In this document: positions 15,501 through 57,480 of the stretch, piece after piece
Layout of the letters: each line of letters opens with the position of its first letter
How positions within the stretch are numbered: position 1 is the first letter of the stretch
Source: Klebsormidium nitens
Lineage: Eukaryota > Plantae > Klebsormidiophyceae
Length of the DNA stretch: 64,000 bases
Assembly: GCA_000708835.1 (NCBI GenBank)
Contig: DF237226.1
Location: forward strand, 49,956-113,955
Direction: 5' to 3'
Program-made: the position numbers and the translations under genes
The notes under the pieces: generated by a model
What the model was told of the DNA's origin: nothing
What the model saw: only the letters and a program-made list of their open reading frames with translations
The model's database searches: none

Positions 15501-18500
15501 AAAATGGGCAAAGGACTGAGCCCATGCTCGCTTGGATGTCTATACACTAGCGCGGAGTGAAGCTGATCAGTTTTGGACGTTGACGACGCAAACATCCGGC
15601 TTCGGTCAAAAACTGAGATGATGAGCTACAGCTAGGCGCCGAGAGCACGCTGAAGGCTTTGAAGGACGCTGATGGCGTTTGCATGAGGGGGCTGACGAAG
15701 CTGCTCAAGCTTCGCAGAATCCAACCATTAGAAGTTTTCTCTTTGCAAAGACGTAAAGCTAGAAACGACACTAATATAAGACGGACGTCTAGCTTGAATA
15801 AACGGCTGGCTCTAGAGCATTCAGATCCCTCAGAAGTGGCGTTACTAAAACCAGCAGAATAGAAGGCCCATGCTACGCAGAAACCCCGCAGTATGTCTAC
15901 ATCAACCACCGAGAAGAGCTTTCCGTTCCAATTACCAGACTTCTACAGTGCTATGCCAGACATGTGATAAGCTTTCACCTCATATCCAAACTCTGACAAC
16001 GGACTCTGACAGGGGCATGTTCTCATGCTTGGCGACCAAAGACGTACCCAAAAAGGAGTTCCTGCCGCTCAAAAGTGCTGCTCACCATTGAAACCGTGAA
16101 CGTGTACCGGGCTGCCTCCAGGGGGGTGAAGCGGAAGAAGTATGTTCCGTCCAGGCGGTCGGTGAGGGACGTCCCGGTCATGTTGTGGTCCGCGGAAACG
16201 GTGAACCGGCCCCCGTCTCGCTCCTGGCCCCGCATAAGACCATTTTCGTCCTGAGCTACGATCATCAAAAACCCAGACACGCCAACACTGCCGGCGGACT
16301 GCAGGTACACTGTGGTGGTCTGAGGACTCAGGGGCCCGGTTGCGAAGACGACCGTGTCCGTCACAATGGGCGTAGCGGAGGCGCTCAGCTTGCCCGGGGA
16401 GGGGATGACGTCAGAACACGACGGAATAGTGCACACGTAAAGACCCAGGCTGTACGTTCCGCTGGTCGACATGACGAAAGAGATGTTGTAGTCCCCGGGC
16501 GGGGAAATGGCGACCGACCAGCGTGCGTACGGGGAGGTGGAGCTCGCCACGCCAGGGGCGGGGGCAGGCGTAAGCAGCGCCACGAAGTTCATCCCCGGCT
16601 TTGGAGTTCCGGCCAGGTCGCGGAACCGGAACGAGTAGTTGTGGGCGTTGGGGCTCTCCCTCTCGCTGAGCAAGTCGATGCTGCCAAGGCCCGGGATGAC
16701 CTTCGGCCCGTCATCGCCGCCACTCCCGCGGCCGCCCTGCGGCGCGGGCGCGGGCGCGAACTTGCCTCCAGCTCCGCTCGCGCCAGAGTGGAAGAAGTCG
16801 TGGGCAATCAGGGGGGAACTGGTGGTCGGGATCAGCGAGCCGCCGTTTGCGAGGTTAACAACGTCGGAGCAGTCGGGCTGGGAGCACGGGTAGAACCAGT
16901 ACTGGTAGTCAAACCCGGGGGGGACCCAGACCGTCACCGAGTACGTTCCGACGGCTGCCCAGGGGGCCGCCTTGAACTTGTAAAAGCTGCCCTGCTGCAC
17001 GTTTTGGGCGACCACGATGAACATCCGGTTGGGTGTTGGGACGCCGTTCGAGTCGGTGAAACTGAAGTAGGCGGTCCAGCCGTTGGGTTGCCCCTCGGAG
17101 GAGACGAACGAGACGGCGCCGTACCCCGGTAAATAAACCACGCGGTTCTGTGGGGGGCCGTTGGGAGCGCTAGCAAAGGTAGTGGTGTCGTGCATGATGA
17201 GGGGGGATGAGGTGGACGGCAAGAGCGCCCCCCCCGCGGCGGGGCTGATGACGTCAGTGCAGTTTGGCACCCGGCAGGCGTATACCCACTCCTCGTAGCT
17301 GCCGCTTGAGGGGACGGAAACGGTCAGGTTGTACATACCAGCCCCGGGGAAGGGGGCCGCGGTGAAAGAGTACCAGGAACCCGTATTCATGCTCCGGAGA
17401 ACCGCCAGGAAAACGCGCCCCGAAGTCGGCACGCCGTTGGTGTCGTTGAAGCGGACGATCGCCGTCCAGCCGTTGGGGCGGTCGATGCTTTGAAGCACCT
17501 CGATGGAGCCGAGACCGGGGACGTATCTGACTTGCTCCTCCTGCTGTTGGCTCCCAGAAGGCGTCATCGCGCCACCGCCGCTCGCAAGGTACAGATAGTC
17601 GTGGCTGATTTGGGGGAAGGTGGTGTTCGGGCGAAGGCCCAATAGGCTCCCCCCGGCATCCCGGTTCACCACGTCAATGCAGTCGGAAAAGCTACAGGGG
17701 TAAACCCAGGTTTCGTAGTTGGTGCCCGGGGGAACGGTTACTGTGAGGTTGTACGTTCCCGCCCCGGTCCACGGAACCGACTGGAAAGAGTACCAAAAGC
17801 CCCGGTTCACGTCCCGGAGGACCGCGACGAACCAGAGCCCCGAGGTCGGAACGCCGTTGGTGTTGTTGAAGCGGACGACTGCCGTCCAGCCGTTGGGGCG
17901 GTCGAAGTTCTGGAGCACCTCGATGGAGCCGAGACCCGGGACGTAACGAACCTGCTGCTGTTGGTTACCTCCCATTGGAGCAGGAATGGGTCCGCCCATT
18001 GAAGGAGCCATAGCAGGGGGGGCAGTGAGGAAGAGGTAGTCATGAACCAGCGCCTTCTGGTACCTTGCGTATGTGAGCTGCGGACTCTCCCCCGGCCCCA
18101 GGTTGAGCAGGCCCGCGCAGGAGGGCACGTAGCACGCGAAGAAGAAGAACTCGTAGTTCTCCCCCAAGGGAACGTTAACCTCAAGGGTGTAGCTCCCGTT
18201 TGAGGCCTTCACGGCCAGGAACTGGTACCAGCTTCCTCCCCCTTTCATACTGCGCAGCAACGCGATGAAAGAGTTCCAGGTCGATGGAATGCCGTTCTCC
18301 AAAAACCGGAATTCCGCCGTCCAGCCTGTTGGGCGGTCCACCAGCGAAAGGACTTGGAGATCCCCGATGTCTTTCATAGTGCCGTTCTGGTTGAGGGGAA
18401 GACGGGGGAAGACCCCCAGTGGGCCCCCGGTGCCAGCAGACAGGTCGCGCCAGAGTAAGGGGGACGCCGCGTCAGCAAAGAGGGATCCCCCGGCCGCCCA

Positions 18501-37200: not shown

Positions 37201-40200
37201 AAACTCTGAGACCCTGAAACCCCTAAAATCCATGAAGTCCGGCCACCGCGAGCCAGCAGGAATCGCCGACATAAGCCCACCAGGGCATAAGAGCATGCTA
37301 GAGCGCACAGAAAACTGAACGGGCGCGGCGTCAACGCTCACCCGCCTAAGTGCCCAAGCAACCAACAACTATGCACTTTGAACCTTCAAAAACTCGAGCA
37401 CGGCTTCATGATCCGAGAAGAAACGCGCATTCCAGTGATCGCTCTGCAGGGCGCGTGCGCACCTCGTAGAAGCGCGCGAGCAGCTGCACGACGGTGCTCT
37501 TGCCGGCGCCGCTCTCGCCCACGAGCGCCGTGACGGTGCCGCGCACCAGTGTCAGCGTCACGCCCTTGAGAACCGCCGCCTCGGGCCGCTGCGGGTACGT
37601 GAAGTGCACGTCTGCGAAGACATTCAGAACTGTAAGCGTTACGGATAAGACAGGTTACCACCCGGGGAGCAGTGGGACTGGTTTGGGGTTTGGGTGGAAT
37701 GTGGATGCGGAAAGGTCATATCCAGGGCAAAAAAACCTGTTCTTCGGTTGGAAGACTACAGTGCCAATTGGAGAAGTCGTCGTGTGCAGCAAGGCAGATG
37801 CGGAGATATGAAACGTCTGACGAAACGAGGGGCGCCGGTCCCAAAAGCACGATGCAACATAATCGCGAAGTCTCCTGTTAAAAAGGTTACACGAGCACGC
37901 ACCAACATGACAAACAGGGTTAAAGTGTTAAAGTGTGCCGCGGCTAAAAGTGTGCCCAGAAGCTATTGGTCCGCTAGTGCGCTGTGCGGGCGGCCAGACA
38001 TGTGAGGGCCAATGTAAACATGCGAGCCGAAAAGTCACGGAAGCCAGATTGACGCCAAACAAGCGACTTTTACCAACGTTCCACCGAAGATACTTAGAAG
38101 GCAATCTAACGCTGATCAGAGCCGACATATGCAGTCCGAAGGAACCAACTGGCATCCGGTGCTCCTCTTCTACCCCTCACAAACTTCGATCAACCCTGCG
38201 ACTAGCGTCCGGTCATGCACCGTTTTGAACTCCGGAACCAGACGGCTATAGAGGTACTGCAGCCCGCTCAGCGGCCCCGGCGCTCGCAATCGATTTCATA
38301 AAAGGTGAAAAAATCGCCTAAGAAATCATTGACTTGAACCGTGCTGGAAGGGGTGGAGTCATATGGCCACTCCAAACTCCCAGACTAACTTCAGAGGAAA
38401 ACAGGGCAGGTAAACTACCTCATCAGGATTCTAGCTGAAATGGGACATCTCTCTCGGGAATAGAGTGCCCGCTTACCCTCCAGCCTAACGTCGCCGCTCC
38501 ACGCCGCCTCGCACGCCCCCCGCACTGACACCCCGTTCGTGCTGGCCGCCGCCCGTCCGTCGGTACCTAGCACCGCCGGCAGCACTTCCGGCACTCCGAT
38601 GTCCTTGCGCCGGTCCCCACAGTCTCGCAACTCGCCACGCGCCTCCCTGCGTAAACAGCTCTCCGTGTCAAGCTTGCAATCTGGGTTTCAAGTCTTGGAG
38701 CATGGTTCTTGGATTGGACGTAGGGCTTGCGACCCCATAGGAGGTGCTCTCTCTCCTCAAGAACTTTCGGAGCGAAACGTTCTTCAGTCCTGCTCCCAAC
38801 AACACCTAACCGGTACACGTTACAACGATGAACGCTCAACCTTATGATCGACGATGGATGACATCGGACGGCTGAAGATGGTGGACCAAAACTTTAGTAG
38901 TGGGGTGGCAAGTTTGACACAGCATATCGCGGCAACACGCCGGGGTGCAACCTTTCGAAGCCGCCCTTCACGGAGCACGTCCCCCGAGCCTCTAGTCTGC
39001 CAGAAGCGTCCTTTGCGCAGGCGTCCTTTGCGCAGGCATCCGGTTCTCGAAACAAGCGGCCCGCGAGATTGCAAAAAGTCTCCTCCTAGCTTGCAGCACA
39101 CGCATCTACTCTAAGAGCGGGATGAAAGGGATTCATTGTTAGAAGCAAGGCAGGACCGCCGTTGGAAGGAGTGACGTGGCGATATTTGAGGTTCATAACC
39201 CCGGATCAGGCCGAGAAGGCCCCTTGAAAACCCATGTCGCTGACTTCAACAGCACTTCCAACGTAGGAACAACAAATACCGAACCAATACCGTTTCTCCT
39301 TATCCCGGCACTGTAGGCGAGCCAAGCTAAGACCCGGGCGCGTACTGACCTGTCCAATCCGACCGCAAGCGCGGCATCGGGACGGCCCTGTCGGCCGACG
39401 TTGTTGATGCGCTCGACTGCGGCAAGGGCGGTGCGGATGTCGGCCAGCGTGTTGACGAGGCCTTGGACCGCAAAGGTGAGGGTAAACGTGTACCCAATGA
39501 ACGCCACCATAGTGCCAACTGGGAGCCGGCCCTGTAAAGCATATTTTCAGTGTCATAAGTATCAAGCCGTTTAAACAATCTTGTTAAGCTCGGGAAACGG
39601 ATAGGGTTAGCTTGGGGGCTAGGCTGAGATTGGGTGCAAAAGTAAAAGTGGACGATTTTCAACAAACGCCAGCATGGTCGCCCCCGGGAGCCGGCCCTGC
39701 AAAGATGGTTCTTTGAGTCAGATACAAACAAGCCAAGAAAGCACTAAGGGACCAACACTAGCACCTTAACCTAAAAATGATCTGCTCTGCACCATTAACC
39801 ACCCCAAAAAACCCCCCACTAATCCCAGGGGAGCCGGGAGTATCCAGCGGACCATATCAAGAGCGTTCAGTCCGGTTCATTGTTCGACTGATTGACAACG
39901 AAGCAAGTACGATACCTTGTCCGGCATTGCCGGAAACAATACCATTGTCTAAATCGACAAAAGCGCTCCGTCGTGCCTGGCATTTACCCCACCAGTGCAG
40001 CATACTTATTTAAGAAGAGCGGTTCCTGTAAGCTAAATTTTCTGACGGTAACATACTTGCATAACGCAAGTTTATTTTCTGCGGGAATGTCACCACATTG
40101 CAGTCCTCACCGCCTTGACCTCGGCCCCCCCAACAACGTAGAGCACGAAAAGGGAAACATAGATCGCGATGCGCGTCCACGACTCGTTGAGGCTCTTGGC

Positions 40201-43200
40201 CACCCCGAGGCGCTCCCCGGCGCCCCGGCTGCCCGACACCTGCTCGTCGAACTGCCGGATTTGCCGCCGCTCCCCGCCAAACGACCGCACCTGTCGAAGC
40301 ATAATTCAAGCGTTCAGGGGTTTCAGGTTTAATAGGTTTAGGGTTTGCCATCCAAGGGGCGGCCCCGCGCTATGGCTGCCTGACATCTGCTCGTCGAACA
40401 CGCGGATTTCCCGCCGCTCCCCCCCGAACGACCGCACCTGCCAGGGGTTCAGAGCTTTTGAGGTTTGCCATCCCAAGGGGCAACCCCGTGCTACGGCTGC
40501 CTATAAACCTGCTCGTCAAACACGCAGATCTCGCGCCGCTCCTCACTGAACGACCGCACCTGCAGAATTGTATTGGAAGTCTTAGGGGTTCAGGGGTTTG
40601 AGTTAGCCATCCCAAGGCGCGGCCCCGCGCCATGGCTGCCTACAGACGTGCTCGTCGAAGATGCGGATCTGCCGCCGCTCCCTGCCAAACGACCGGACCT
40701 GCCAAGCACAGTTCAAGGGTTTTGGGTTTTGGGGGTTCAAGATTTTTAGCGTTTGGCCCCCCGGAGCACTCTTCTACGCCCCGACTGCCTGACGCACGCT
40801 CGTCGAAGACGCGGATCTGCCGCCGCCAAACGACCGGACCTGCCAAGTAGAGTTCAAAGTTTTATGATTATCAGGAATTGCCACCCTAAGATGTTCCCCG
40901 CGCCACGGATGTCTACAGACCTGCTCGTCAAGAGGCGCAGGTCTGCCACCGCTCCTTGCCGAACGACCGGACCTGCCGACGTTCTAGAAAGTTAGTATGT
41001 TAAGGATTTAGAAACGTAGGATTTGAAATTTCTAACATAGGCTACGGAGTGACAAACGCGCGAGAGTCGTAAGACGAGTCCCGCTTGAAACAGCGTACTG
41101 GGAATAGCGAAGGTGCTATCATCAGCCTCTCTCACTCAAGCGCATGCAAGCGCGAATGCTTTTGGGGTCGGCAGACCAAGTGAAGGACACAACAGTGGAG
41201 CATCCAACGCTGGAGGTTTTGACCGGACTGCAGCGACCGGACTCGAAGTATCTACATCAGCTTGCCCCAGTGGGTGCAGGTAGGAGGGAGCAGATTCGTT
41301 CAAAAAGATCCTTATTTGCACGGACGAAGGAGGTAATTTCAGAAACGAATCAAGCACTGAGCAAGCCCATAATCCTGCCGCACTAGCAACGGCTACCTAA
41401 TCGCTCGTGTAGCCCATTCCAAGTCTCAGGTCCGTGTTAGACAGACCGCGGCGGCATCGAAGACTCCACAGTGAATAAAAAGCGTTTGCTTCCCTGAAGA
41501 TTCTTCAGATTACTGATTTCTAGCTTCGTTTCTTGTTTCCTGTTCCCGCAGACGTTAGATGGTAAGCTGCGGTCCGGAACTAGGCAACTTTCGAAACGCA
41601 CAACACATCCCGAAACGAGAGACCGGACTGGCTGCAACAGCAGTGCGTGCAACCAGCCAACTGGATGGTGAGGAAGGTCTCGCTGCTCGCCTCTGGTTAG
41701 AAAGGTCGCTTGTGAAGATGACGTAAAGTCTCGACTCTGCGATTACAAATAGCTGACGGATCCTCCTCGCAGAACCGGAAAGAGGGACCGGATCAGGCAC
41801 GCTGCCATGCGTGCGACTCACCGTTCGAATCGCGGAGAAGGTCTCGCTGGCCGCCTCCCCAAGCCGCCCCTGCGACACCCCAAAGTCCTTGAAAGCGGGG
41901 GTTGTCGTGCGCTTGTAAATGGCTGCAGAAAGAATCGAATTCAGTAAAAGTGGCTGCAGAAGAATCGAGTTCAGTAAAAAGAAGCTGTCAGAAAGAGGCA
42001 CTCAAAGGATCCGCTTGGTCCGGATCGCCAATGACGTGGCCATGTAAGAAAGCTGCCCGTCTTGATCAGCAAGGGAGAGGCCACACGATTTCGTTCGGCA
42101 GCGGGAGAAGCGAAGGGGAAGAAAAGCATCTTGGGAGCGCGACATGGTACTAAAATGGAAAGTGCTTCTAGCTGCTGGCATCTAATACAATCCGGCTTCT
42201 AAATGCCAATCCACAATGCTGATTTTGCCGTGCATATAGCACAGGAAGGATCCGGCTGCTTCCAGGCTGGGTGATTATACTCAAATCTGCTTTTTCGACC
42301 AGTAGCAGAGCTATAACCGTGTTTAAGGTCTGATTTCTCTTTGAATCGGGGCATTGGACACATCATCAGCTTCTACCCAGCCCGCAACCGACCCTGGTTA
42401 ATCACAAGAACGCGATTATCTCCCCTGTGCCGATCTACACGCTGGTGAAGAGGCTGGCCACCACGGGCACGGGCCCCTGTGAGTCTGGACGCCGAAGTAT
42501 CAAACAGCTTCTAACCAGCCCGTAACCGACGATGGTCAACCGCCGAAACCCGGTTCTCTCACATGCGCCATTTGACACACTGGTGATACGGATGGCTAGC
42601 ACAGGCGCGAGGTGCGGGACGATTCCAAGTAATGAAAGGGTTCCTAATCAACCCGTAACCGGCCCTGGTTAACCGCTGGTTGTCTCACCTGCGCCGATTG
42701 ACACGCTGGTGATGAGGATGGCTAGGACGGGTGCGAGACGTGGGGCGAGTCTGAAGAGGATGACGAACGTGCCCAGAACTTCGGACACGGAGCGGAACCC
42801 TCGGTCGCGTGACACATTGTCCAGGACCACCGAGCGCAGCGCAGCCAGCTCCGTGGTTACCAGATTGGTCAGCTCACTAACCCGGAACCGGTCAAAGAAC
42901 TCGACCTGCAAAAAGAGAGGCGAGTGAAAGGCACTCTTGAAATCGGACATTGACAATGATGATGAAAATAAGTAACGCCACATAAGAACAGCTAGAAGTC
43001 TGGAGGAGCAAAGTAATTTCAGAAGATAGAACATGGGATCAGAAAGTTCGAGAATTGATTCACCAGCCGATCGACTCAACCAAAAAAGACCTGTTGAAAC
43101 AACCAGTCTTTAAGTCTCGCTGGAAAGGCGATTGCCTGTCAAAATTGAAGCCAAGACCCGCATGCCGATACTGACAACCCCACTCCGACCTAACCAAAAC

Positions 43201-45573: not shown

Positions 45574-48159
45574 CCAGGGTCAGGGTTTGGGGGTTAGGCC
45601 CCAGGGCGTTGGTCGCGGGGTCGCGCGTATCAGTGCGTGACCGCCGCGCCACAGGCGCGCGCGGCGCGCGGAACAGTACTTTTGATTCGGCCGCCGGCCG
45701 GCCGCGCGTGGACTTGAGCGGCTGCGGACACGGTCAGGACGGTTCAGAGCCCGTTCAGAGTCGGAGGGCGACAGTAGAGACCTTGTCCCTCAAGAACCGC
45801 TGCCAGGCTGCCCTCTGATTCATGGTCACTGTAAAAAGTGATTGCTCAAAACGGTCACGTTTTCGGTGATGGTGACACTGGTACAACAGCACAAGACCCG
45901 ATCCGAGACCTGGAACCGCTGTTGCATCAAAGTGGGACTGGAAATCTCCGGGCATTGCTCCGGGGCCCAATACGAGTGTATAATGCTAGTTTTATGCGAT
46001 GTGAAGGCGGTGTAACCATAAAGTGATGGGAAAGTGATGCACAATTAGTGCTCACGCGTGCGGGACAGCGCGCGCCGCCGGCCGCATTGTGCGTCCCGCA
46101 CGAGCCCACGTTGGCCTCAAGTTTTCTCCTCACTCGTTCATCTATACCGTTTTGCTCGGGTGACGATGTGGTCGACTTTTATTGTAGTATACCTACGAGA
46201 ATATGAATATGAGCGGCATGTTTGAATCTTCACAACTAGGCAGTCAAACAGCAGAGCAAACAACAGGGTTCTTGTCTCCTGCCAAGCTTTCAGTGCGTTT
46301 TATAAGTCCCTTGCTTGAAAGGGGTTCTTCACGAGAGCGTCTAATGCTTCAAACCACTTACCTTATTGCATTCCTTGTCGGCCGGCGCACTAAGGTGACA
46401 ATGTTGAGCGCCGGGCCAATGTTCCGTCAAGGCAGTCTGAAAAAATCCGTACCGTGAGAGAGGGTTCACATCATCCCTTCGAGTAGAGTCCGCGGACAGG
46501 AAATTGCCAAGGGGTACGTAGCTTTGACCTGATGTATTGATCCCGAAGATACGTCACGATCGCGTTGCCATCCACACATTAAAGAGTTCGGTTCTTCGAA
46601 ACCGCTCCGCTAACGTCGTCCTTGAGAAAGGTGGGCGCAGCCCTTAAAGGTTTGTGCAGGGCGCGCTTGAAGCCGAAGAGATAACCCGCGAAGAAGAGGG
46701 CGCTGAACTTTTGTATTCATGCCTCTTGTGACACATACCTGCTTGACAAGAGCAATATCGAGTACGGAGTATAAGCGTGTCTTCGGGACTCCATTCGGCC
46801 GCGGAGGAGAAAGACCAGTTTTGAGGCCGGACGGTCCGCCATCGCTCTCTCGGCCAACCCACTCGAACTCTGACGTCGGAAACGGGTTTCGCTCGCGCGC
46901 AGCCTGAAACGTGTCCACTTCACATGGGTTTCTAAAGCCGCTTGTGCCAATACCTGGATAAGGTAGCATAGTAGATAGGTACGCCCGGAGATCAAGCTTT
47001 CCCGTCCAGTCCCGATGCGAGGCGCAAGTTGAAACGGCAGATTGACGCCGGTCTATTTGAGAAAGTTCTTATGTACAGACAGCACAGCTGCTAAAATAGA
47101 GACCGTGTTGGAATTGTGCAAAGTTGGAAAGGCGTTTCAGGGCTTCTATGCGCAATGCTTGCGACCAGTCCGATAAAGGTCGAGAATCGAGAAGGAGCGT
47201 GGAAAAAGATTTTCAACCAGAACTACACAAACTTCCTTCAAAGGTGCTTGACCCAGGTTGATGGTCCGATCTACCAGAGAGGTTTTGTTTGCTTGCAGGG
47301 CCAACTTCGAGTACGTCAGACTGAGCGAGGCCTTATGGTGATGCTTACGTCACTACTACCGACATGTAGTTCGTGCCGAGCCGCATGACAGCTGTCGCTT
47401 CAAAAAGCTGACACCTTGTCTCAATCTCTCTGCTCGATCGGATTGCACTGAATATTTTGGACGCTTGACGGAAATGTTTTGCTCCCCAAGGCCCAGTTTC
47501 GACCAAAACACTGTGGCCTTTCCCTTGCATCCCTTCCCTACCTCGACTCTCCTGTGCAAGCGTCAAAATCTATATAGCGAAGTCCTATTCCACTCGCGGC
47601 CTTGCGGAGTGGAGACATCTTTGCTAACGACGCTGGCACTGCCTCTAAGCCGTTGTTTTTGACAGGTGGCATCACATGGCGCGACATCTTACCGATATAC
47701 TCTGCTCCCTTTGCATCACAAACAACGGCTTGCACTCTAGGTGCCAGCCTGCAATACCACGACCAACGCTTCTCCATATTGAAGCTGATATGCGCTCTGA
47801 CGACGTCATCAATTGGACGTCCGGACTACCAGTGACATGCAAGCAAGTTGCTTGAGAACAAACGACTCGTCAGCTGTGCATGCTAAATCGCTTCTAGCAC
47901 CCGATCGCAAACGTATGTGTCATAGCCTTCTGCAAGCTGTACGTTTGGAGAATGCCTGCAAGGAATGATTCCGGACTCGAAGGTTGTCTGAAGAAACGAC
48001 GGCTGAGCATCTCTCGTATTGGAGTGACTACGAATGCGAGTCCGTTCCGGACCACAGTGGAGGCTAGGAATACGAGGACCTATCAGAAGGAATTCGCCAT
48101 TCAGTCACTTCAAATTCGCTCCGGACTTCGTGCTGATTCGAGCTCGCCGCCGATCGGAC

Positions 48160-49445
48160 TGTCCGCTGGTCTTCAGCGTCCGGCGTCGCGTCGTAAACTG
48201 GATTGCTTTCTCGAAGCCGTTAGATCTGCCACGTGGCGTCATCGGACGGCTGGACGTTGACGAAGATCCTTGGACCCACAAGGTCTGGTTTGCACGTAAG
48301 ACGCCTTTATATAGCCGAATACAGCCCCACTCTGCAACGCCAGCTAGGCGTTCAGGGCTGCGGTCCCTGGGTTCTGACTTCCTTACCGGGCTGCGGTCCC
48401 GGTTTTCTGACTTCCCACCGGGCTGCGGTCCCGGTCCAGGCTGCGGTCCTGGGGAACACGCGCTACGGGTGATCAATTGACATCATTAGCGCATGATCCA
48501 AACAACGTTGCACCTTTTGCTGCCAATCACAGGTCTGCGAATGCTCGATCGCAGGCCAGTTAAAAGAAGAGGATACATATGTAAGACCGGTACGGGGACC
48601 GTGACGGGCATGTGGTGCTTCATTTTCCTGTAATGCAGACATGGGTCTGATTTTGTTCAACGTTTTTCCGGGAGGTGGATGCAACCTCCGTGGCACTTTC
48701 AACACTCAAACCTTCAAATTCAAGTGCATCAAGTCAACAAAGTTGGAAGTGTCGTTGGTTTCGTCGTCTTGACCTTCTGGATATGCTGACGTCCGATTGA
48801 TTACCCACATCATTCGTTGTCTTTGTTCAGAAAACGAAGGAAAGAAGAAACTTGGGTTTGTTTAAACCCGGAATTTACAGCTACTCATGCTGCCGGATTA
48901 AGCATGGCGCGGCGCCTTTGCTGACGCATGAAACACGAACGTGTTTGCTTTGCTTTACAAGCAAGTTTCACATTTCATCCCGAGCTTAAGATCTGTGGGT
49001 GAAAGTTGGTTTGAAGCGTTGGGGAAGGAAAGGTAGTTTGGAGGGATACATGAGTGAATGGTAGAAGCGAAGATGAGTGTTCTTATGTATGATCGAAGTT
49101 GGTTGGTGGTGTGAGTTCGGTGTAGATGGTTTGCGGCAGAGAAGGTGGTGGTTCCGGGGGAGCTCCGTGGAGCACCCCTGGACAGAGGTCCTGCCCCTGG
49201 GCCGGGGGGCGCCCCGGATCGATCCGCTGAAAGATGCGGGGCCGAAGCTCGCCGTATATATCTGCTGCTTGTATGACTTTGGTGTGGGCGAACCTGGTGA
49301 CTACCCGAGAAGGACGTTCCGACCGTCCACGCGCCACGTGTCCCTCATCGGACGGTACTTCGAAACGCTGGATGTCAACTCCGGACGCGACTGTCGCTAT
49401 GGGCCTCCGAAGCGCGTCCGAAGCACAGAAGAGCGATCGGCGCTC
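48160..49445. repeat. Dispersed ~1.3-kb element, copy 1 (possible non-autonomous mobile element or duplicated non-coding transcription unit)
   Basis: Colinear homology with 54880-56160 along its length, with near-identical blocks at 48417-48475 and 49143-49234. Confidence 0.85.
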
Positions 49446-53222: not shown

Positions 53223-54879
53223 TTTGTTGAAGGTGTCGGTTTGCCTATTGATTGCGCCAGAGAAGTGCAGAACGGAATTGCCGAAACGGCAACTCGGCGA
53301 GGCCTCTGGAAGACCAGGCGCCAGAACGAGGATTCGAGACTGAAAGTGTGCAAGTTGGGATGCTTTGTAGAAAGAGCGGGACCTGGCTGAGAGGTACGTG
53401 ACCATTGCACGTGGTTGTCATGTTCCTCAAAACGGAGTGGGTATGATCTAGGCGAAGCCGTATGACAAGACGCGTTCGCAACCCGTCATCCTTGCGGGGC
53501 AGCGAGTCGGTACGAATCGTTCCATTTAATCACATGAGAAACTCTCGCGATTTACTAGAACGGTCTTGTCATACGATCATGAAATGGGAGCCACCCATTC
53601 TTTCGGGCTTGCCTAAAATATGTGACCTGCTCTTTCCATCAAGTGGTAATTTCTATGTATGATACGACCATATGAGATGCTCAGCTTCGGTGCGGAGCAT
53701 CCGCAACTGCAGCTTTTGTTGGGCAGAAATATCAACGCAATCGATCCCTCTTAAGTCGAGTCAGCAAGCTATGCTTCATATTCTTCGTCGACGGTCTTGC
53801 TGACAATGAAGCGTACCGATTCCCGGCCGTACCCTTTCAACGTGCCTCTTCAGAAGAGTCGAAGGATTCTTATCGGAACCTCAATCCCGCATCCTATGCA
53901 TATTACCTCATTCGGGCCAGTTGCATAGACTTAGGTGCGTAAGCACGGCGGGCTCCGTTCATTTGTAATCCCGCAGAGGCACGGAGATTGAATTTTACAG
54001 CCCCAGCGGCCAGAATAATGGTCTTCGGTGACATCTGTCTGCTTGCAGGGCCATCTCGCAAAATGAAATCTGCTTCATGTTTAATTTCAAAGCGTTGCTA
54101 TGGAAGTCGTGCCAAGCCCTGACAGCTGTCATTCTAAGAAAGCTGACACCTTGTCAGCACCTCTTGGATTTGGGTACTTGGATTATGCAATCAGTGGTTC
54201 TTTCCAATGCTTCTTTGATCACTCTGCTTCCAGAGTCTTGCGCTTCCAAGAACACTGTAATCTCCTTCCCCATGACATACTTCACCTGCCTGGCCATGAA
54301 AATTCCTTTTTCAGCGGTTAAATGTCTTTAGCGAAGCGTTTCCGCGGAGCCTTGCTGAGAGGTTTGTTCTCGGTTTGACACGCATCTTAACCGAGCTGGT
54401 TGGGCCGACGCGTAAAAGGATTGAAACCAAGACCTGCTCTGCTCTTTTCTGCCCAAATAACACGTACGGAGTTCCATTCTAGTTGCCTTACTAAACAACC
54501 AGCTGCACTCTTGTATTCCTGATGGAGCTGGTTTGCAACTCGAGACGTCAACTACTGCACCGCCAGGGCAGGCACGAAAATGCAGCCAGCGAAATGACAC
54601 AAACGCTCGATAAGAAGCGCGCACTACCTCTTGCTTGTGGAGTTTGACAGGTTACGCCGAGTGCAAGGTAATGCCAGGGAGACGTAAGACTCAAAACTCA
54701 AACATGGTTCATAAAACAGAGGGCTGAGCAAGCGGATGCATTTGAACTGCAGGGTTGTTCCGGGTCCTTTGTAATGAAGGCTCAAAAGACGCCGCCACAA
54801 AACATTCACAATGTTTCGGTCTTTGTGCGGTCTTGATCTCCGCTTCCGTACCGCTTCCCCCTTCCCAGGCTCGTCGCCA

Positions 54880-56160
54880 ACCGTCCGCTGTCGGCGTTTC
54901 AGTACGCCATCGTCGCGGCTTCGCGTCGCAGCCGACCGTCGCGATCTCGAGTGCGCTTCTGGGAGCCGTTGGATCTGACACGTGGCCTTATTGGACGGCT
55001 GGATGTGCATGTGCCAGGTTCTCTCGGCCCACAAAGTGCAAAATTCACGAAAGAAGCCTTTATATAGACAAATGTTGCCCCTCTTTGCAACGCCTGCTAG
55101 GCGTTCAGGGCTGCGGTCCCTGCAGGGCTGCGGTCCCTGTTTTCTATTTCCTTACCGGGCTGCGGTCCCGGTCCAGGCTGCGGTCCTGGGGAACACGCGC
55201 TACGGGTGATCACACATGACATCATTAGCGCATGTTCCAACAAACGTTGCACCTTTTGTTGCTGATGTGATCGCGCAAAGCTGTTGCTTGCAGGACATAA
55301 ATTGAACTGCAGCCCTCGTAAGAGCTCTGCACATGCCTCGAATTAGCAGCGTATGGTGCTTCATTTTCTGTAATGCAGACATGGGTCTCAATTTTGTTAA
55401 ACGTTCTCTTGTAAGGAGTTTGAAAGCCTCCGTGGCACTTTGTTCCTCACTCAAACATCATATTTAAGTTCACCAAGTTGGTGAAAGTTGGAGGTGTCGT
55501 TGGTTTTGTCGTCTTGACCTTCTGGTAATCCTGACGACCCATTCATTCATTCCACATGATTTGGTTGTCTTTGTTCAAGATCGAAGGAAGAAACTTGTTT
55601 CATTCAGAAGCCGGAACCTACAGCTACACATGCTACCAGATTATGTAAGGCACGGCTTGGCTGACACATGAAACATGAGAGTGTTTGTTTTCAGAATTCA
55701 TTCTGACCTTTAGATGTGTGGGTGAAAGTTGTTATGAGGCTTTGGGTACTGCGACAGGATGGCTGTGGAGAGGAATACGTGAATCCTGAAAGTGGAAACG
55801 AGTGTGGTTTGGAGGTGTGATTCTGGTGAAAGATGGTTTGGGAATGAGAGGTGGTGGTTCCGGGGGAGCTCCGTGGAGCACCCCTGGACAGAGGTCCTGC
55901 CCCTGTGCCGGGGGGCGCCCCGGATCGATCCGCTGAAAGACGTGGGGCAGAAAGCTGACCTCATATATCCGTTGCTTGACTGAATTTACTGTGGGCGAAC
56001 CTGGTGACTATTTGGGAAGAACGTTACGACCGTCCGTGGAACACGTGGCTTTCATCGGACGGCTCGAGACCGCTGGATGTCGGAACCGGACGCGTACGCG
56101 GTCAGTCGGCGGCCCTTTCCGGACGAAGCGCGTCCGAAGCATGGGAAAAGCAGGCGGCGC
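54880..56160. repeat. Dispersed ~1.3-kb element, copy 2 (direct repeat of copy 1)
   Basis: Same order of motifs as 48160-49445: agccgtt.gatct / cacgtggc / (a)tcggacggct box, tttatata, hairpin array, catcattagcgcatg, gtaatgcagacatgggtct, gtcgtcttgaccttctgg, 92-nt palindromic block, cgaagcgcgtccgaagca. Confidence 0.85.
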
Positions 56161-57409
56161 TTCTAAAGCACGTGAGAACGATTCTCAAGTCGTGCTTAAA
56201 AATCTTTCTCAACCTGTGAAACAAACCCAGGAGCAGCCTTTTGCTCTTCTCGTGGCATATGCGCTTCAGGGTACAGATGCCTTGCGGTCTGATAAGCAGT
56301 AAAACCATATTTCTGATGATATCATTGGGAAGAGGACTATTGGTCTTGACGATGGCTTCGACTCCGCTAACTCTGAAGTTAGAAGTTTTCTTCTGAACGA
56401 GCGGTCTTAGTGATAACAGTCAAGCCGCATGACCATGAAAATTACATACATCTGAATGAACGAAGTTCAACTCTCACAGCGCGCAAGGGGGACAATCGAC
56501 CCGGCTGGTGACGTCATACTTCTCATCGTCTCATTGCAGAAAGGCCTTCCTCCGAACTGCAGATCAGGCGCTGTTCCTGAGCTTCTTGTAATGGAAAACG
56601 AGCACCATTTCGGCACATATCTGCTTTTCGTTGTAAAAGACCTGACGCCCTGCCCAGGTAATATTGCCCATCAAGGTCGACTTGGTTCTCCCGTTCACGA
56701 CATTCCAACCCTTGCTTTTCGCGAATCGACCAGAAGCGAAAACGTGCGGATGGCTTACCCGCAGGTTCATTCGCCTATGAATTTGACCGATCGCCCAGGG
56801 TTTCTTTTTGGGTGATATAAAGGTTTCGTTTGTCAGGTGGCTTCTACTTTGGTGGCGCTAGAAAGCTTCCCGAAATTGTCCTCGGAAGGAAGACCGCATC
56901 ATCTTGCACCGCTCACACCGTTCGGAAGGCCCCAAATTCGTTCCTTTAAGCGTGCCCCCCAACGTAAACTGCCCTCGCGGCTTTGCTTTCCCCAAGTTCA
57001 AATCTTCCCTCCGTCCAACTCCCTCATGATCGGCGTTGACTGATGAGCAGATCTGTTGTCAAACTGCTATTACTTTCCTTTCCAACTTCCTGTCTGGCTC
57101 TAAAGTGCCCAGAAGAGAGCCAGTACATTCGCTGCCAGAGCTGAATCGACGGAAAGCCTCGTCGGCAGCACCAGATCAGAAACAGCGTCAAAAGTCGCAA
57201 ATTTGTCTCGACCATTTCCAACGATGGTGTTTCGACGGCCACAGGTTTCAGATTTCCGCACCCCTGACCGCAAGCTAGAGCGAACTCCTTCGACCCACGT
57301 GACCCTTTGGCAAAAGGCAAAACGGTGCAGATCCATCGTGCCGCCAACTCAGCTGTGCTTTGTATTCAACCGTGTCGCAAAGTTGTACTTCGTTGCTAAC
57401 ACGTGGCTG

Positions 57410-57480
57410 ACCTCGTTGCTGACCCCGTTGCCAACCTCGTGTCCAACCTCGTTGCTAATCTCGGCGCTATCCTCGACGGT
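57410..57480. repeat. 12-bp minisatellite (~6 degenerate units)
   Basis: gctgacctcgtt gctgaccccgtt gccaacctcgtg tccaacctcgtt gctaatctcggc gctatcctcgac. Confidence 0.8.

Follow-up and report, generated by a model that had tools for sequence, protein, structure and literature searches.

The plant U6-type class of Pol III genes (type-3, USE + TATA) includes U6 snRNA, 7SL, MRP, U3 and the plant telomerase RNA, and the orphan Arabidopsis RNAs AtR8 and AtR18 belong to the same class. The consensus of the plant USE is RTCCCACATCG, and the Arabidopsis U6-26 promoter carries the box TTTATATA at a TATA-to-start distance of 23 nt. To our knowledge, only few plant USE/TATA-driven Pol III RNAs have no assigned function, and we know of none among them that is an array of identical hairpins resembling protein sites. 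Repeated short hairpins with one loop motif, whose number shifts by duplication, are found in the bacterial sponge RNAs CsrB, RsmY and RsmZ, which bind CsrA/RsmA through GGA loops. A hairpin that dimerizes via kissing loops is known as the DIS of HIV-1.

The present study deals with a locus of Klebsormidium nitens, a member of the algal lineage closest to land plants. The analyzed stretch of DNA, in the following called the window, comprises 64,000 nucleotides of contig DF237226.1. The locus is characterized by promoter boxes at a fixed spacing, a strand-biased fold, paired stems around an invariant loop and clear boundaries of conservation. We consider it probable that the hairpin array forms the body of a small non-coding RNA gene that has so far escaped annotation and of which two diverged paralogues exist (copy 1 and copy 2), with a USE, a TATA box and the U6-like spacing of Pol III-type promoters (Table 1).

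The locus resembles plant U6-type genes in its external promoter, which consists of a USE with CCCACA core and the box TTTATATA 22 bp further on, with a predicted start about 23 nt past the TATA. The predicted RNA would likewise open with a terminal hairpin, close with a U run and measure about 170-185 nt. It differs from these genes by the lack of any sequence or structure match in Rfam, by the lack of a telomere template, by putative terminators that are only T4 and by a body composed of near-identical hairpins, which is found in none of those RNAs. The repeated short hairpins with a single loop motif and a hairpin number shifted by duplication are reminiscent of CsrB/RsmY/RsmZ. This resemblance is an analogy and not homology, given that the latter are bacterial and expose GGA loops, whereas the algal gene is eukaryotic, of Pol III type and has a CUGCGGU loop. 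Like the HIV-1 DIS, the algal loop carries a self-complementary hexamer, in this case on the plus strand only; unlike in the DIS, its pairing needs two G.U pairs, the loop has 7 nt instead of 9 nt and dimerization is hypothetical.

Table 1. Positions of the features of both paralogues and of the duplicated unit within the window.
Feature	Position	Strand	Basis or remark
Conserved upstream element GCCGTTAGATCTGCCACGTGGCGTCATCGGACGGCTGGACGT (G-box CACGTG + ATCGGACGG)	48218-48262	+	Second copy, equally oriented, at right end of unit
USE-like box GACCCACAAGG	48273-48283	+	CCCACAA core identical in both paralogues
TATA box TTTATATA (tttatata)	48306-48313	+	22 bp past the USE; GCCTTTATATAG identical in both paralogues
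Predicted small RNA, copy 1, ~182 nt	48337-48518	+	First base of 5' hairpin to T4 run; fold z, paralogue identity
H0, 5'-terminal clamp hairpin aacgcc-agcta-ggcgtt	48336-48352	+	Kept in copy 2 with one loop change
H1 caggg-CUGCGGU-ccctg	48353-48369	+	Sequence, stem count, pairing count
H2 accggg-CUGCGGU-cccggt	48385-48403	+	Sequence, stem count, pairing count
H3 accggg-CUGCGGU-cccggt	48417-48435	+	Sequence, stem count, pairing count
H4 ccagg-CUGCGGU-cctgg	48436-48452	+	Sequence, stem count, pairing count
H5, long 3' stem-loop domain of 47 nt (GGAACACGCGCUA...UAGCGCAUGAUCC)	48453-48499	+	Same fold in both paralogues
T4 run in CACCTTTTGC, putative Pol III terminator	48515-48518	+	Conservation collapses directly after
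Region C, 430 nt, noncoding	48588-49020		70-80% conserved between units; no codon periodicity
Block B, 89 nt, GC-rich	49150-49238		97% identical between paralogues; alignment
Right-hand CACGTG-ATCGGACGG-CTGGATGT element	49335-49375	+	Direct repeat closing the 1.1-kb unit
Copy 2 gene	55026-55257	+	Covariance model R1: 219 bits
Copy 2 USE	55026-55036	+	CCCACAA core shared with copy 1
Copy 2 TATA box TTTATATA	55059-55066	+	Alignment with copy 1
Copy 2 RNA, 168 nt	~55090-55257	+	Predicted
Copy 2 H0	55089-55105	+	
Copy 2 H1	55106-55122	+	
Copy 2 H2	55123-55139	+	
Copy 2 H3	55154-55172	+	
Copy 2 H4	55173-55189	+	
Copy 2 T4 run	55254-55257	+	

Promoter boxes and their spacing

The TATA-like box that the first-pass annotation had noticed in front of the hairpins turned out to be part of a real and conserved promoter. 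The CCCACAA core of the USE is invariant, with the box of copy 2 reading GGCCCACAAAG. In both paralogues the gap between USE and TATA amounts to 22 bp and the distance from the end of the USE to the predicted start is 53-54 bp, and 23 nt lie between the TATA and the first base of H0. Both the box TTTATATA and this distance of 23 nt agree with the Arabidopsis U6-26 promoter. The combination CCCACA-N20-32-TATAWA was found three times in the 64 kb, in all cases within the two units, compared with an expectation of 0.05. About 20 nt 5' of the USE is the conserved upstream element, which has the form CACGTG...ATCGGACGG...CTGGAYGT. The two promoter spacers (22 + 23 nt) exhibit about 55-60% identity (counted by eye on the alignment) and not a single indel, in contrast to the rest of the duplicated unit, where indels are frequent. 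Spacers that diverged in sequence without changing in length are the mark of a promoter whose boxes keep a fixed distance.

In Arabidopsis, Pol III is specified by 23-24 bp between USE and TATA, and Pol II by 32-34 bp (PMC8287931). The corresponding distances from USE to start are 54-55 bp for Pol III and 66-67 bp for Pol II (bioRxiv 10.1101/2022.07.06.498962). With 22 bp and 53-54 bp, the algal promoter is, as judged from its spacing, a member of the U6-like, Pol III-type class, by rules that come from land plants and may not be those of this alga. The initial proposal of a Pol II start is thus difficult to maintain, because the USE-TATA gap is near the Pol III class of 23-24 bp and far from the Pol II class of 32-34 bp, an Sm site and a conserved 3' box (by eye) are missing, and conservation halts at the T4 run. 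The accompanying idea that the hairpins are located at the 5' end of an RNA fared better, since a start about 23 nt past the TATA would put them there.

A Pol II snRNA of the Sm class was rejected based on the spacing (22 bp and not 32-34 bp) and the lack of an Sm-like site (RAU3-6GR). The sole match to the plant-type 3' box (CA-N4-AGTNNAA), recognized by eye at positions 48553-48565, is absent from copy 2.

Hairpin array and predicted RNA

Re-reading of the bases verified all coordinates and sequences that the first-pass annotation had given for the array. CTGCGGT is enclosed by perfect stems of 5-6 bp in all eight array copies (four at 48353-48452, four at 55106-55189), and the remaining nine occurrences in the 64-kb window have flanking stems of 0-1 bp; the background probability of a stem of at least 5 bp around a 7-nt loop is 0.0014. 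The 11-mer GGCTGCGGTCC is present exactly eight times in the window, and all of these copies are located inside the two arrays (four here, four at 55109-55186). With one mismatch allowed the number of matches rises to nine, a value that compares with an expectation of 1.9 and was not attained in any of 100 shuffles.

Pairing over the eight hairpins comprises 97.6% of the cells, which was matched by 0 of 500 shuffles, and falls to 64-67% if the partner is shifted by one column. Both-sided changes are found at three of the six stem positions, and the copy 2 counterpart of H2 is CAGGG/CCCTG, i.e., altered on both sides of the stem. The sixth stem pair is standard in seven of the eight hairpins only if G.U and U.G are allowed, which is the case on the plus strand alone. 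Loop and closing pairs are identical in all eight hairpins, and around the conserved blocks divergence has gone so far that the sequence can no longer be aligned. The first-pass annotation had interpreted the array as a recognition site composed of structure plus loop, and the stem changes that preserve pairing around an invariant loop are just what such a site predicts.

The array bears traces of tandem duplication: copy 1 is periodic at 33 nt, and copy 2 contains a perfect doublet of 17 nt. Since the hairpins were multiplied in this way, only three stem types (CAGGG, CCGGG, CCAGG) are independent. They are connected by two compensatory double changes, a covariation drawn from paralogous and tandemly duplicated hairpins that gene conversion has possibly homogenized. 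The order of elements is H1-spacer-H2-spacer-H3-H4 in copy 1 and H1-H2-spacer-H3-H4 in copy 2, where H2 is a perfect 17-nt duplicate of H1; in copy 1, H2 and its spacer repeat the H3 unit. We prefer a history starting from a three-hairpin ancestor, in which each paralogue would have gained its fourth hairpin by the duplication of a different unit. Another reading of the alignment would be a 16-nt deletion combined with a compensatory C-G to A-U change in H2. Pairing and loop identity are retained under either history.

The fold of the predicted RNA is strand-biased. The z-score amounts to -4.0 for copy 1 and -5.1 for copy 2 on the plus strand, compared with -2.0 on the reverse strand, with an advantage of 12-14 kcal/mol in minimum free energy for the plus strand. 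H5 contains one G.U pair that is possible on the plus strand only. The plus strand is favored because of this better fold and because the G.U pairs are usable on this strand alone. In both copies, the global minimum-free-energy fold pairs arms and loops of different hairpins.

The tail beyond H5 ends in CACCUUUU. Paralogue identity is 86-92% inside the RNA, i.e., in H2-H4 and the 3' domain, and drops to 34% right after CCTTTTG (48513-48519); the corresponding stretch of the identity profile ranges from 48538 to 48588. Conservation ends together with the T4 run at 48515 (55254 in copy 2). This run is only a minimal signal and is equaled in length by an internal T4 within the array (48403-48406; 55140 in copy 2), which we regard as the weaker one; four Ts are the minimum of Pol III terminators, and six or more are most effective. 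Termination at position 48403 may give rise to a shorter isoform of about 70 nt. Given that the part past the internal T4 is the best conserved one, read-through must be frequent if Pol III is the polymerase.

None of the RNA families considered accounts for the locus. A scan of the whole window against Rfam 15 gave no match at gathering thresholds; in 40-64 kb, relaxing the threshold to E<=1 retrieved nothing relevant, with one chance miRNA hit elsewhere. ARAGORN found no tRNA in the window. A telomerase RNA was discarded, because both strands of both units lack every permutation of a template for CCCTAAAA/CCTAAAA, the telomere repeat of Klebsormidium (PMC8287931). The window ORFs are short and interrupted. 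A coding tandem repeat is incompatible with the flat distribution of mismatch phases across all blocks and with the different ORFs that overlie the array in the two copies, and Pfam revealed nothing in three scanned ORFs across the unit.

A covariance model of the RNA (R1), of the kind that the first-pass annotation had recommended, was used in the search for relatives; applied to the window with the filters switched off, it returned just the two copies. A metagenome scan for two loops at a distance of 6-36 nt resulted in at least 120 loci. Nearly all of the matches listed repeat at a period divisible by three and lack a flanking stem, and were classified as unrelated coding repeats of GC-rich contigs. 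The application of R1 to 100 of the at least 120 loci yielded one score, namely 24 bits for L017, where a tandem repeat of 24 nt lies at the end of a contig, and this weak partial match was judged unrelated. Accordingly, no relatives or orthologues were found among the metagenome matches listed. Word-based protein searches with the ORFs overlying the RNA, which were aimed at transcript and genome contigs of relatives, gave no match, and the loop motif was retrieved from the full-text literature only in primers and miRNA strings.

The duplicated unit beyond the array

The duplicated unit has a length of 1.25 kb (48189-49444) and is present again at positions 54937-56161 with an overall identity of 73%, so that the two paralogues are located 6.7 kb apart. 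This extent of the unit, the USE box, the 3' stem-loop domain and the T-run end were all absent from the first-pass annotation. Conservation runs rightward from the TATA and extends only about 90 nt leftward. The 5.4 kb between the units have no protein-level paralogue elsewhere in the window (tblastn), and the duplication is therefore restricted to the 1.25-kb unit and one 50-nt element. Exact matches to CACGTG-N6-ATYGGACGG lie at the right end of each unit (49335, 56042), and the left-end copies of the CACGTG element (48233, 54982) exhibit N5 spacing in the alignment.

A gene of 180 nt leaves a further 0.9 kb of paralogue conservation unexplained, namely region C and block B, which are separated by a stretch of about 50% identity (49025-49125). 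Region C has no significant fold (z -1.0 and -1.6), and the same holds for block B on either strand. On its minus strand, block B follows a USE-like CGCCCACACCA (49290-49280) and an ATATATA (49261-49255), both of which are conserved in copy 2. The gap between these boxes is 18 bp and matches neither plant class, and no T run is located downstream on this strand. A structured minor RNA gene on the minus strand of block B is at most a tentative candidate, in view of the insignificant fold, the deviating spacing and the missing terminator. Two pairing-preserving changes concern block B and its partner in region C, and both work on the plus strand only: CCGGAAU/GUUCCGG versus CCGGAAC/GUUCCGG, and CCGC...GCGG versus CCGC...GUGG (read off the paralogue alignment).

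These observations bear on a rival reading, in which a structured long non-coding RNA of about 0.9-1.1 kb would carry the hairpins as its 5' leader. Such an RNA would be transcribed by Pol II from the same TATA on the plus strand and comprise hairpin gene A, region C and block B. The identity of 70-97% between the units for 0.9 kb past the array, the weakness of T4 runs as terminators and the two plus-strand changes in and around block B are in agreement with such a transcript. It is nevertheless an unlikely explanation, because the USE-TATA gap is of Pol III type and identity drops to 34% for about 50 nt right past the T4 at position 48515. Moreover, regions C and B are devoid of a significant fold, a conserved 3' box and an Sm site are missing, and the opposite strand of block B carries a separate set of USE/TATA-like boxes. 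A small Pol III-type RNA that would end at the T4 run is the interpretation that we favor.

Alternative origins and proposed function

Another explanation is a functionless, microsatellite-like tandem repeat that is palindromic by chance and is kept identical in the two copies by recent duplication or gene conversion. The hairpins have clearly been multiplied by slippage (33-nt and 17-nt periods), and the identity of their loops could be the result of concerted evolution instead of selection. However, the neighboring sequence of the duplicated unit has an identity of 34-50%, which documents that the duplication is old. The three different stem types are all still paired, and conserved elements enclose the array with precision: USE, TATA and 5' hairpin on one side, 3' stem-loop and T run on the other. 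We thus regard this explanation as very improbable.

The least credible alternative is a role at the DNA level, i.e., a cluster of transcription factor sites, cruciform or single-stranded DNA hairpins for an enzyme of the HUH or transposase type, as had also been considered in the first-pass annotation, or the end of a mobile element. At the DNA level, perfect Watson-Crick palindromes look no different, two dispersed copies of the 1.1-kb unit exist with a short direct repeat at their borders, and the TATA, read as TATATAAAG on the minus strand, would belong to a leftward promoter with the palindromes located upstream of it; yet the compensatory changes in two arms point to base pairing and not to dimer half-sites, a double-stranded dimer site being disfavored because symmetrical compensatory changes would harm both of its halves, the loop is asymmetric, the sixth pair requires G.U, and conservation extends rightward of the TATA and only about 90 nt leftward. 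The genomic neighborhood does not support a mobile element either. The 17 ORFs of at least 90 aa that were scanned in 44-64 kb contain only ARM/HEAT-type repeat and LRR domains according to Pfam, and neither Rep, HUH, transposase or recombinase nor RT domains were detected among them. An inverted repeat of at least 40 nt or a terminal inverted repeat is missing in 40-64 kb. The hairpin substrates of HUH enzymes or transposases are thus left without a corresponding ORF among those scanned and without a terminal inverted repeat, and the array fits exactly into the frame from promoter to putative terminator.

For the preferred small RNA gene, transcription would start at about position 48337 with the first base of the 5' clamp hairpin. 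The transcript would then pass four short hairpins, each presenting the heptaloop CUGCGGU on a G-C-closed stem of 5-6 bp, followed by the 47-nt 3' stem-loop, and end at the T4 run, so that the RNA would measure about 182 nt, and 168 nt for copy 2. Such an RNA could act as a multivalent scaffold or decoy, on which several molecules of a single RNA-binding protein would occupy the four identical sites of loop plus stem. Another possibility is that the loops might kiss each other within or between molecules. Kissing is conceivable because CUGCGG is self-complementary via two G.U pairs. The energy of its self-pairing is -7.5 kcal/mol, which ranks among the top 4% of all 7-mers and compares with -2.3 for the opposite strand, and the statistical support of about 0.04 is weak.

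The most likely function that we infer is thus that of a scaffold RNA, which either binds proteins in a multivalent manner or assembles via kissing loops. More specifically, it is tempting to envisage a Pol III-transcribed sponge or scaffold in a streptophyte alga, a counterpart of CsrB/RsmZ, whose four CUGCGGU hairpins titrate or assemble a dedicated RNA-binding protein or multimerize by kissing; drawn from analogy, this scenario is tentative and rather doubtful. The loops also match the grammar of anticodon loops with respect to the 5-bp stem, the 7-nt loop, C32-U33 (positions 1-2) and G37 (position 6), a pattern with a chance of about 1 in 16 to which we give little weight. By this likeness, a decoy for an enzyme that reads the anticodon arms of tRNAs is conceivable.

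Taken as a small RNA, the locus of K. nitens probably represents a new family of Pol III genes of the plant USE/TATA type, which is unusual for its body of repeated hairpins. Its architecture, i.e., USE, 22 bp, TATA, 23 bp and a terminal hairpin, provides a search rule for more such genes. If the array is transcribed, it would allow multivalent RNA-protein or RNA-RNA assembly to be studied on a model that is compact and easy to mutate.

Conserved blocks within the paired units

The two paralogous units, each of which carries a predicted small-RNA gene, share further conserved sequence (Table). The noncoding region C is bordered on both sides by sequence that cannot be aligned between the units; codon periodicity is absent from it and its fold is not significant. 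The GC-rich block B is preceded on the minus strand by boxes resembling the plant snRNA-type upstream promoter box (USE) and TATA, respectively, which are separated by a gap of 18 bp. No terminator was found for block B, and its fold is likewise not significant.

Table. Conserved and repeated features in the window.
Feature	Position	Length or copies	Conservation
Region C, noncoding	48588-49020; 55345-55745	430 nt	70-80% between the two units
Block B, GC-rich	49150-49290 (with minus-strand boxes)	89 nt	97% identity between the two units
50-nt element	47371-47420; 54107-54155	50 nt	82% identity between the two copies
Short CACGTG-type element	48233-48262; 49335-49375; 54982-55011; 56042-56080	direct repeat, both ends of each 1.1-kb unit	
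Direct duplication	17251-17974	306 nt	75% identity
Array	40187-40985	4-5 copies of ~122-147 nt	61-88% identity to reference copy
Local repeat	42367-42751	3 copies of ~130 nt	
Tandem repeat	57390-57475	7.2 copies of 12 nt	

A metagenomic repeat with the same core

A 24-nt tandem repeat with the same GGCTGCGGTCC core as the hairpin arrays terminates the AT-rich metagenome contig Ga0114999_10237635 (locus L017, positions 1-340). The core lies partly within palindromic arms of 7 bp, and the covariance model R1, built from the predicted hairpin RNA, scores the locus at 24 bits. The repeat is probably unrelated to the hairpin RNA.

Elements upstream and at the ends of the units

The 50-nt element, which includes GACAGCTGTC and GCTGACACCTTGTC, is located ~0.8 kb upstream of each unit; its copies share the 6.7-kb offset of the units, and their surroundings are unalignable. 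The unit-end element consists of a G-box (CACGTG) followed after 5-6 nt by ATYGGACGG and then by CTGGAYGT. It may represent a common upstream promoter element or the remnant of a past tandem array.
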